A stretch of DNA of 63,773 nucleotides, filler included, from Cercozoa sp. M6MM (Eukaryota; Protista; Endomyxa: Ascetosporea), in NCBI GenBank assembly GCA_040357565.1. It is 12 parts of 12 records of this genome, joined end to end, with 100 filler letters (N's around TTAATTAATTAA, not from the genome) between each part and the next. Parts side by side here need not be neighbours in the genome. Positions count along the whole stretch, not along the records: positions 13,800 to 16,882 come from JBDODJ010001618.1; positions 16,983 to 18,595 come from JBDODJ010001974.1; 10 more parts are not named here. One strand, written 5' to 3'. How positions within the stretch are numbered: the stretch's first letter is position 1; each line of letters opens with the position of its first letter. Both the position numbers and the translations under genes were made by a program. The notes beneath the pieces are model-generated. The model saw nothing but the letters and a program-made list of their open reading frames with translations. It was not told the origin of the DNA and made no database searches. Shown here in pieces: positions 13,800 to 17,008 of the stretch.

Positions 13800-14137
<338 letters not shown>

Positions 14138-14195
14138 CTGAGTGACTGACGGTTGGTGACACGTATGATCACTGCTAACACGTGTGTGGTTCCAG

Positions 14196-16788
14196 AGGAC
14201 GACGTCGAGACACACATGCGACTCATCGTGTCGCCCTTTGGTACATGTGCTGTTTTATCCCTTCCTTGACTCAGTCTACTCTTCTTACCCCCCTCCCCGT
14301 TAGACGTGGTGATGGCGGTGCCTCGCGACGCGGACGACCACATCGATTGGCTGCTGCGGCAGCAGCACTTTAAGAAGGTACCCTTTTGAGTCCATTTACC
14401 ATTGGATGGTCCTTCCATTTGTACCGTATGCGTGTGTCCATTTGAACCGTCCATTTGTTGTGTGTGTGCACAGGCCATGCTGGCCGCCAAGACCTACGAG
14501 AAGGAACTCGAGCGACACACCCTCTGGGGTACCTCTTTCCTGTCTGTACTCTTGTGTGTACAACCACTCGTACACACTGTACCTCTGTGTGTGTTCAAAC
14601 TGTACCTGTGTGAGTGTGTGTCCAAACTATGCGTCCAAACTGTGTGTCCGAACTGTGCAGGCGTGAGTCAGCGCTACCTGACGCACCTGCTGGAGCGACG
14701 TGAGTACGCGCGCTTCGTCGCCATCTGTCCCTCGCTCTTTGACAAGGTACGTGGTCTGCACCGACAGTCCGTACGGACAGTACATATGGACGGTCTGTAT
14801 GGTCTGAACTAGCGGTAGAAATGTGTTGTGGACAGAACGAGGACCGATGGGCTGCTTGGATTGCGAAACTCATCACGATGCGACTGGTAACACGCATGTG
14901 GTCACGTGGGTCAGTCTGAGTGGTCATATGGTCACTGTGAGTGGTCACATGGGTCACGTGTGCACAGGTGCACCTGGTGGTGCCGGTGATTCCGCTGGAG
15001 GATCCAACGCTCTCCGAAGACACCTACAAGAGCGTGTTGGAGAACCTGCTGAATCACCACAGGTTTGTCCCCCCCCCCCCCACCCTCTTCCCCCTACCCC
15101 CTACTCCCTCTTACCCTCTCCACTTGTCTTCCTGCAGTGACCAGGGCGTATTGTTCTTGGAAACGGTGCGGCGGTGGCCGAGGTAGCATCTACTGCCCAC
15201 TCAATTGATGCCCGTATGGGACGGTTTTTGAGACTGTATGTGGGTTTGTAGCCATCTGTATCATCTCGAGGACATCATCGACGCCGTGCGTGAGTCCCTG
15301 GTGCCTTACCCTCCCATTTGCCCAATTTGCCCTCTTTACCCGCCCCCCCCCCCCGCCACCGCCAACAGAAGAAGGTCTCGTTCGCGCCGATCGTCGACGC
15401 GTTGGGCGAGTTGTACGCCATGAGTGGCCGCTACGCTGAGGTGCAGTTTACCCCCTCCCACCCACCCACACACACATATTCCCTTTACCCCCTACCCCTT
15501 TACTTCCTACCTTCTGGTACGACAGGCCGTCGGAGTGCTGCTGAAAGTGCGGCGGCATAACGCCTTCTCGCTCATCCAGCAGGTGTTTACCTCCGCAGTT
15601 ACCCCGTTTACCCCCCCCCCCCCCCCCCGGTTCCCCCCCCCCCCCCCTTCCCCCCCAGTTTACCCCCCCCCCCGTGAGCAGCACAACCTGGTGGCGCAGA
15701 TCTCGCCGAACCTGGCGCGTCTGTTGTCGCTGGACGTCGAGCGAACGGCGTCGCTGGTGCTGCGCTACTCGCACGAACTCGACGTTGACGGTGTGATCAC
15801 TCTCTGTCTGTGTGATCATTGGGTGGTCAGTGAGTGATCACTGGGTCACTGGGTGGGTCACTGGGTCACTGGGTGGGTCACTGGGTCACTGGGTGGGTCA
15901 TGGGTGACACGTGTGAGCAGAACTAGTGACGTCGCTGATGCGACAGGTGCCATGCGACGACGTTGTCGTGCTGCCGGCTAGCAAGGTCAAGACCGACCTG
16001 GACCCGCGGGTATCTCCCGTCTCTTACCCTCTCCTTTACCCTCCCTTACCCCTATTTATCCCCTATTTATCCTCTTTACCGTTCTACCCCTCTCCCCCGG
16101 ATTTAGATGGGCACGCTGCGCGTCAACGATCGCGGCGATTTGACGCTGTGCATGCCGCGCGCCGACTTTGACCGGCGTCTGTGGCACCTCTTGGTACGGA
16201 CACACTGGTTTGTATGGACCTACTTGTACATGTGTACATGTGTACATGTGTGCATGTGTGTACAGAGAGCCGTGTTCCGGAGTGCCGAGGCCAAGTTGCC
16301 GGCGCATCTCGGCGATCTGACTGTCCACTTGTGCGGACGCTGTGCCGAGGGTGCCTTTACCCCCTCTTTACTCCCTCTTTACTCCCCTATTTACTCCCCT
16401 CTTATCCCCCTCTTTACCTTTATACCCCCCTTAGACGACCCGGTGAGCGGCATGTCGAAACAGGACCAGCTGAAGCAGTACCTTTGGACAATACTAGCAC
16501 CTGTGTGCGCGTGTGTGAACAAGGTTGTTTGGGGGGCAGACTGCTGCGCGCACTGCACTCGTACCGACTGGACGCGGCGTTGCAGATGTGTCAGGACAGG
16601 AGTCTCACCTCGTGCGTCGTCTTCCTGCTGGGCCGTATGGGGTACCTGCCTGCCTTGTTTGTGTACTGTCTTGCCTGCCTTGTTTGTTGGGTGATGGGAG
16701 GTACTTGTACAGCAACACACTGGACGCGTTGAAACTGATGGTGACCGATCTCGGCGATGTGGCCCAAGCCGTCGCTTTCATTACTGAG
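14196..16788 (+). CDS. VPS41: Vacuolar protein sorting 41 (HOPS subunit), internal fragment, 17 exons
   Basis: Spliced IVSPFDVVMAVPRDADDHIDWLLRQQHFKKAMLAA and YRLDAALQMCQDRSLTSCVVFLLGRMGNTLDALKLMVTDLGDVAQAVAFITE match VPS41 signature regions. All 16 introns are GT-AG with frame preserved. Confidence 0.93.
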
Positions 16789-17008
16789 GTAATTTCTTAT
16801 CCCCATCTTACCCCCATCTTACCCCCATCTTACCCCCATCTTACCCCCATCTTACCCCCATCTTACCCCCATCTTACCCCCCNNNNNNNNNNNNNNNNNN
16901 NNNNNNNNNNNNNNNNNNNNNNNNNNTTAATTAATTAANNNNNNNNNNNNNNNNNNNNNNNNNNNNNNNNNNNNNNNNNNNNGCTTGTGTAGGGGGGGGG
17001 GGTACATA

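Follow-up and report, generated by a model that had tools for sequence, protein, structure and literature searches.

Tandem repeats fill most introns and spare the exons of a partial VPS41 gene in the amoeba Lemnamoeba sinaloensis

Results

Here, we describe a partial VPS41 gene from Lemnamoeba sinaloensis (formerly Cercozoa sp. M6MM), a marine amoeba, in which tandem repeats fill most of the introns and leave the exons clean. The window analysed is a stretch of 63,773 nucleotides (nt) in which 12 parts of the genome assembly GCA_040357565.1 are joined end to end. All results concern one 3,083-nt piece of this window (positions 13,800 to 16,882; JBDODJ010001618.1), comprising one gene and 17 introns. 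M6MM is an amoeba from fish gills that belongs to Apofilosa (Rhizaria), and funannotate, with RNA-seq as training data, was used for its published annotation (PMC11069148, 2024). It was named L. sinaloensis in October 2026, together with a long-read assembly (PMC13746701).

The three forward frames of the piece hold a chain of short conserved peptides of the VPS41 TPR/CHCR type. From these frames, a GT-AG exon model was made by hand, with its phases verified by arithmetic. The model has 17 exons of 43 to 109 nt (mean, 72 nt; 1220 exon nt in total) and 16 closed introns of 62 to 132 nt (mean, 86 nt), plus one intron that is open at the contig end (Table 1). The architecture of this gene, ~13 introns per kilobase of coding sequence with introns averaging 86 nt, is typical of the genome. 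When an unspliced in-frame stretch was searched with phmmer, one database protein was returned, here called P0001 (417 amino acids, 98% identical), which is the NCBI entry “MHM6MM_008887, partial [Cercozoa sp. M6MM]”. All 16 of its junctions are identical to those of the hand-built model.

The identification as VPS41, already made in an initial annotation of this DNA, is supported by homology. P0001 matches Pfam PF23556 (TPR_Vps41) at 5e-51, with the match spanning the junctions, and can be aligned with yeast Vps41 of the HOPS structure (7zu0_F). Single exons match the same family (Vps41 TPR-like region) in colinear order. Furthermore, the exons show a period of 3 that is absent from the introns, and they have neither tandem arrays nor C/G skew. 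In a search of public sequencing runs for the locus, one DNA run contained 81% of the sampled 31-mers, and no RNA run matched.

We find that tandem repeats in this gene are confined to introns. Arrays called by Tandem Repeats Finder (TRF) cover 588 of 1467 intron nt (40%) and 0 of 1220 exon nt. They are present in 11 of the 17 introns, each array having its own unit of 7 to 23 nt and periods ranging from 7 to 28. 6-mers that recur within their own segment make up a share of 0.33 in introns, compared with 0.03 in exons (Mann-Whitney test, P = 2e-4). Of 16 evaluable introns, 13 exceed mononucleotide shuffles in this measure (z ≥ 1.9) and 10 exceed dinucleotide-type shuffles; introns 1, 7, and 15 have no internal repetition. 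In the later scripted statistics, positions 16225 to 16265, which are part of intron 13, were masked. The arrays end 2 to 17 nt from the splice sites, and none crosses into an exon. C/T-rich arrays with a period of 10 to 11 lie at 16023–16072, 16354–16417, and 16795–16881. The period of 11 in this class is due mostly to intron 17; with that intron excluded, all that is left is a broad hump at lags of 8 to 12.

These results bear on the initial annotation, which had described consecutive introns as each filled with its own motif. The seven introns that it gave as examples all carry the motifs it named, among them GTCCATTT-like units in intron 2 and TGTG, GTAC, and GTCCAAAC units in intron 3. 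Its claim that the exons stay clean, with the fill strictly between GT and AG, agrees with the lack of arrays in any exon nucleotide. Its list of introns was real and incomplete: there are 17, of which the first is intron 1 (14241–14303), and nine further closed introns (4, 7, 8, 9, 10, 12, 14, 15, and 16) also went unlisted. The idea of one motif per intron is right for every array and does not extend to the three introns that lack internal repetition.

The introns form two compositional classes, defined on the sense strand. Eight introns (1, 6, 8, 9, 10, 12, 14, and 17) are C/T-rich, with a GC skew of −0.48 to −0.96. The other nine are G/T-rich or neutral, with a GC skew of −0.08 to +0.39. 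Counts of C versus G are heterogeneous among introns (χ2 = 203, df 16, P = 2e-34); exons show no such heterogeneity (χ2 = 7.2, P = 0.97). T outnumbers A in every one of the 17 introns (P = 1.5e-5), and the C-rich introns have the same orientation in 8 of 8 cases (P = 0.008). When the reverse complements of the 25 C/T-type shared 7-mers were sought in all introns, none was found; the sole exception in the list of shared 7-mers is GTGTGTG, the complement of which is the (CA) run of intron 9. Such strand specificity of the motifs fits some constraint at the RNA level, that is, in splicing.

Each class also has words of its own. C/T introns hold 27 copies of TTAC (3.6 expected; z = 12.6) and 20 of TTACCC (0.9 expected), and 23 of the 80 A's stand in the context TTACC. 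The words of the G/T introns are TGTG (32 versus 6.5 expected), GTAC (17 versus 2.5), and GGTCA (13 versus 0.8). Palindromes are not significantly enriched in G/T introns (14 versus 9.0 ± 2.8).

Motifs of the G-quadruplex type (four runs of three or more G's) are found in seven introns and in no exon. On the template strand, they lie in C/T introns at 15069–15116, 15321–15354, 15451–15467, 15611–15673, 16039–16063, and 16801–16882; one is on the sense strand of intron 11, at 15843–15893. Their presence in introns is a consequence of composition.

The splice sites are canonical, each of the 17 donors being GT and each of the 16 closed acceptors AG. A TTAC-type yUnAy word stands in every one of the seven closed C/T introns; its A lies 17 to 31 nt from the acceptor, and a C/T tract follows it. 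This is the usual distance of a branch point, and the repeat unit resembles a branch point with its pyrimidine tract, in several redundant copies. Three C/T introns end in TTAG, which is one change from TTAC. Among G/T introns, yUnAy words are depleted (2 versus 11 expected), and only looser UnAy or GAAC words occur. Donor 8-mers recur within their own intron above all 300 shuffles, with exact copies in introns 3 and 11. Acceptor words show no recurrence within their own intron.

The two classes also differ in predicted folding. C/T introns are predicted to be unstructured (0 to −5 kcal/mol) and G/T introns to fold at −16 to −54 kcal/mol. Only intron 11, which has the strongest fold (−54 kcal/mol), goes beyond its shuffles (z = −2.2); the other introns are within shuffle range. 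An Rfam search of 14096–16224 gave no match.

Some intron ends are shared or repeated. Introns 2 and 5 both end in GTGTGCACAG (14464–14473 and 14958–14967), and introns 10 and 11 both end in GTGAGCAG (15674–15681 and 15913–15920). At 14961–14976, a tandem GTGCAC(A/C) pair straddles an acceptor, joining the end of intron 5 to the start of the next exon.

Nine of 16 introns have a length divisible by three (P = 0.05), which is too weak for interpretation. Five of these (introns 3, 6, 10, 13, and 14) have no in-frame stop. Their retention would add a low-complexity, often proline-rich peptide instead of triggering decay. It is the A-poor composition that removes stop codons.

Table 1. Exons and introns of the VPS41 fragment, in positions of the window. 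Each line gives an exon and the intron that follows it; exon borders are those of the hand-built model, whose 16 junctions are the same in P0001.
No.	Exon	Intron	Intron length (nt)	Strand	Intron features
Upstream		13800–14195		+	open 3′ part; acceptor CAG at 14193–14195
1	14196–14240	14241–14303	63	+	C/T class; no internal repeat; A of TTACCCCCC 17 nt from 3′ splice site
2	14304–14377	14378–14473	96	+	G/T class; ~4 (G)TCCATTTG units, then (TG) run; end GTGTGCACAG
3	14474–14528	14529–14660	132	+	G/T class; donor word GTACCTCT recurs exactly inside; TGTGCGTCCAAAC x3.4
4	14661–14746	14747–14835	89	+	G/T class; weak period-13 array (GACAGTCCGTACG); 51-nt exon downstream
5	14836–14886	14887–14967	81	+	G/T class; almost wholly GGTCAC units (period 21); end GTGTGCACAG
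6	14968–15062	15063–15137	75	+	C/T class; C13 and CCCCCTA units; A of CTTAC 25 nt from 3′ splice site
7	15138–15182	15183–15251	69	+	mildly G/T-rich; no repeat
8	15252–15300	15301–15368	68	+	C/T class; TTACCC, ATTTGCCC x2, C12; donor at 15286 equally frame-keeping, database model takes 15301
9	15369–15440	15441–15525	85	+	C/T class; TTTACCCCC units (period 15) and short (CA) run
10	15526–15582	15583–15681	99	+	C/T class, 61% C; TTTAC, then C-runs up to 18
11	15682–15790	15791–15920	130	+	G/T class; TCACTGGGTCACTGGGTGGG x3.5; TCACTGGG units, period 8/12/20, 97% match; donor word GTGTGATC exactly repeated inside
12	15921–16009	16010–16106	97	+	C/T class; CTTACCCTCC and CCCCTATTTAT units (period 10–12)
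13	16107–16193	16194–16265	72	+	G/T class; TGTACATG x4.4, running into acceptor GTGTACAG
14	16266–16350	16351–16434	84	+	C/T class; CTTTACTCCCCT x5.5, from 4 nt past donor nearly to acceptor CTTAG
15	16435–16477	16478–16539	62	+	G/T class; short TGTG runs and G6 only; donor GTACCTTT
16	16540–16641	16642–16712	71	+	G/T class; TGCCTGCCTTGTTTGT x2
17	16713–16788	16789–16882		+	C/T class; open at contig end; TCTTACCCCCA x7.9 (98% match), from 7 nt past donor

The open intron upstream of exon 1 consists, in order, of (AC)97.5 at 13800–13994, an N gap, (TG)21 at 14095–14136, and a G/T-rich stretch with a CTAAC branch-point-like word. Sequence counted as real extends from 14096 to 16882. Across the gap (13800–14136), the same dinucleotide repeat thus stands in opposite orientations. 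Either the two form a true inverted pair inside a single long intron, or two contigs with repeats at their ends were joined in scaffolding. The P0001 model begins at an ATG inside this intron (14167–14195). Its first 9 to 10 residues (MITANTCVV...) run through the acceptor CAG and are therefore probably translated intron; the true upstream exon lies beyond the N gap.

For the exons in 15921–16477 (P0001 residues ~240 to 355), between two conserved Vps41 blocks, there is no alignment with the yeast structure or with the best Pfam stretch. This part of the TPR region may be an insert that is specific to the lineage or evolves fast.

Discussion

The richness of L. sinaloensis in introns and simple repeats is already known. 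Its 27-Mb genome has 8704 genes and consists of 84% genes and 6% intergenic DNA. Introns number 13 per gene (10 to 13 across both genome papers), with a mean of 82 bp and 99.5% GT/AG borders (PMC11069148, PMC13746701). Multiplying 13 introns of 82 nt by 8704 genes, introns would amount to roughly one third of the genome. Simple repeats are strikingly many, chiefly (AC)n at ~2% of the genome, and were confirmed by PCR (PMC13746701). What appears to be new here is the link between introns and repeats, the two classes, and the modules of TTAC plus C-run. The main texts of both genome papers (PMC11069148, PMC13746701) never link repeats to introns (0 matches for “intronic”, “genic”, and “low complexity”) and give no account of two classes, of TTAC plus C-run modules, or of units beyond microsatellites. 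Likewise, our literature searches found no earlier description of an intron-repeat link in Lemnamoeba, of two strand-specific classes, or of branch-point-like modules.

We consider it probable that these are ordinary U2-type GT-AG introns, the interiors of which have been rebuilt by local slippage or tandem duplication, with the units filtered by the transcribed strand. With approximately one intron per 70 to 100 nt of coding sequence, introns would be the main non-coding DNA of a compact, slippage-prone genome. The interior of an ~80-nt intron would be nearly free to vary and would be constantly rebuilt by replication slippage or tandem duplication. Since duplication would be local to each intron, every intron would come to have a private unit. 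The transcribed strand, in turn, would limit which units survive, so that intron RNA is kept U-rich and A-poor and splice signals are retained. This filter could be a strand-specific splicing constraint or a mutation bias linked to transcription.

Such a process would have two outcomes. One would be an unstructured C/U-rich tract of repeated TTAC plus C-run modules that resemble a branch point and pyrimidine tract. The other would be a G/U-rich tract of TGTG, GTAC, and GGTCAC words, with the donor word sometimes within the repeated unit. Units that contain splice signals would be harmless or helpful and would thus persist, while purifying selection on the protein would halt arrays at exon borders. 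A dedicated “rewriting” system would be unnecessary. The initial annotation had proposed such a process, genome-wide, with intron-definition or chromatin signals as the alternative, and had not recognised the introns as a described class. Nothing here indicates a special process or a new intron class: these are canonical GT-AG introns with tandem-repeat fill, no new machinery is shown, and the genome was already published as intron- and repeat-rich (PMC13746701). Its suggestion of slippage-type synthesis fared better, as this is the natural source of fill with a tandem array structure.

Several points weigh against this explanation. It is drawn from a single gene, and its reach beyond that gene may be limited. 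The splicing of the VPS41 introns is predicted from the gene model and homology. Slippage is suggested by the structure of the arrays, and no length polymorphism was observed. Transcription-coupled mutation bias could yield the strand asymmetry without any selection. As G/T introns have no clear yUnAy, reading the units as splice signals would account for no more than half of them. Finally, 458 6-mers are common to different introns, against 379 ± 28 from composition (z = 2.8). Because this excess is modest, the small shared vocabulary of the initial annotation comes down mostly to two compositions and a few words; its two compositional classes and the TTAC(CC) excess stand, but sharing beyond composition is limited.

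Some of the same evidence could be read as a sign of selection on the motifs themselves. On this account, C-rich and GU-rich tracts would be signals bound by dedicated RNA-binding proteins for intron definition, marking 80-nt introns between 70-nt exons. Candidate binders would be KH poly(C) proteins and CELF/TDP-43-like GU binders, with the arrays kept as redundant sites. This would suit the strict strand specificity, the sharp contrast in composition between exons and introns, the position of TTAC at branch-point distance, and the discreteness of the two classes, with no GC skew falling between −0.48 and −0.08. It would also suit the C/T class being predicted fully single-stranded, and so accessible. 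We nevertheless regard selected signals as unlikely, since three introns of the same gene model are repeat-free and every intron has a different unit. Moreover, both binding and an effect on splicing are hypothetical, and the strand asymmetry is possibly mutational.

The arrays might instead be the origin of the introns, having expanded or been inserted in coding sequence and then been intronised via cryptic splice signals in their units. The arrays of introns 14 and 17 start 4 to 7 nt past the donor and reach almost to the acceptor or contig end, the TTAG end of three C/T introns is one change from the TTAC unit, and the donor words of introns 3 and 11 belong to the repeat. A possible source would be the capture, at DNA breaks, of TAA[G]n, the reverse complement of which is C(n)TTA. 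This candidate telomere repeat stands at five contig ends and also within contigs, and the genome authors call the mechanism of intron gain unknown (PMC13746701). In VPS41, the reverse-complement core TTAC(C)n is present 20 times as TTACCC, in units with periods of 10 to 12. However, these units carry 3 to 5 extra bases and the strict CCCTTA occurs once only (16043–16048), which makes the telomere-like idea weak here. Acceptor words lie outside the repeats, and non-repetitive introns exist. An origin of the introns from arrays is thus improbable on the present evidence, and we are equally doubtful of the broader proposition that slippage-prone arrays with ready-made splice modules (TTAC plus C-tract, GT-rich donor words) beget introns in Lemnamoeba.

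It is scarcely credible that the introns are decayed copies of a transposon-derived family (Introners). The very high intron density and the 8- to 10-nt ends shared by introns 2 and 5 and by introns 10 and 11 would be in keeping with such a family. Against it, the 17 introns have only low-complexity words in common and no longer sequence. Comparing the two ends of each intron (the first 12 nt with the reverse complement of the last 12) gives just 1 to 6 matching positions, and junction words are not duplicated beyond chance. The genome paper likewise found no Introner signal (PMC13746701). With no family consensus, terminal inverted repeats, or duplicated junction words, this candidate is close to refuted.

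An artefact would arise if repeats had been collapsed or mis-joined in a short-read metagenome-assembled genome, or if low-complexity coding sequence had been miscalled as intron. Short-read contigs of Lemnamoeba do terminate in simple repeats (PMC13746701), as this contig does, and an N gap separates its (AC)n and (TG)n. C-runs of 12 to 18 are hard to size, and five introns with lengths divisible by three are free of in-frame stops. We judge an artefact to be very unlikely all the same. Most of the sampled 31-mers (81%) are in a public DNA run, removal of each of the 16 introns restores a reading frame colinear with Vps41 profiles, and the period of 3 is found in exons and not in introns. In addition, the simple repeats of Lemnamoeba have been confirmed by long-read assembly and PCR (PMC13746701).

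If the VPS41 pattern is genome-wide, it would link two published oddities of Lemnamoeba, namely its many introns and its many simple repeats. It would also provide a testable model for the recognition, and perhaps the origin, of very short introns. Were the introns indeed to have originated from arrays, the 13 introns per gene of a 27-Mb genome without Introners would be accounted for, as a case of repeat-driven mass intron gain. If, on the other hand, a compact genome is simply undergoing neutral slippage in the one kind of non-coding DNA that it has, the pattern would be a descriptive footnote to the published genome.

Comparison with known systems

The chlorarachniophyte Amorphochlora amoebiformis is likewise an intron-rich rhizarian, with GT-AG introns that lack Introner features (PMC12730881). 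A simple repeat, [AT]n, is present in half of its lineage-specific gained introns. Unlike in Lemnamoeba, its introns are long and one repeat alone, the AT dinucleotide, is involved; neither classes of motif nor a bias in strand has been described for them (PMC12730881). Introners (Gozashti et al., 2022, PMC9860276, as cited in PMC13746701) resemble the VPS41 introns in being short and numerous, and explosive gains of introns in protists and algae are explained by them. Introners share a family consensus, with terminal repeats and target-site duplications. In contrast, the VPS41 introns have neither a consensus nor terminal inverted repeats.

Repeat-type intronic splicing elements include G triplets in small vertebrate introns, CA/GU repeats bound by hnRNP L, TDP-43, and CELF, and C-rich tracts bound by PCBP. 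Like the VPS41 words, these elements are short, repeated, and strand-specific at the RNA level, and they help define introns. They differ in forming only part of an intron and in having experimental support, whereas the VPS41 words make up most of the intron and are known from sequence alone. In a case closer to an origin from arrays, Zhuo et al. reportedly described in PNAS in 2007 human introns born from tandem arrays, in which cryptic splice signals of the units let the arrays act as introns, and expansion of an array would create an intron or make it longer. That case concerns a few alternatively spliced primate introns, whereas in VPS41 of Lemnamoeba 80-nt introns run through the whole gene and are modelled as constitutive. 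C/T-rich intron repeats of 10 to 11 nt, comparable to the VPS41 arrays of that period, were also reportedly described by Read et al. in 2013 in the haptophyte Emiliania huxleyi, which is of an unrelated lineage.

A search of metagenome contigs with P0001 found no relative. Scanning metagenome contigs for the motif TTACCCCC-N3 in three copies gave 38 unrelated contigs, without (AC)n and without a Lemnamoeba-like architecture. One of these (L025) has a long prokaryote-type open reading frame, putatively ScpB-like, with the array outside it. Seven others (L001, L006, L011, L016, L017, L024, and L034) are near-identical metagenome loci with a GC content of ~0.62, unrelated to Lemnamoeba. Loci of this type have CCCCTAATTA-type arrays between copies of a conserved ~45-nt word, at 2.5 to 5.5 tandem arrays per kilobase. 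Three contigs from metagenome Ga0307489 (L037, L031, and L027) are GC-rich, with many arrays of period 11 (GGGTACTGAGG, AATGAGGGGGT, and CCTATGTACCC), and also have ACCCTAA/AGGGTTT telomere-like runs and GGC-type coding repeats. These three may come from a eukaryotic alga with similar 11-nt arrays.

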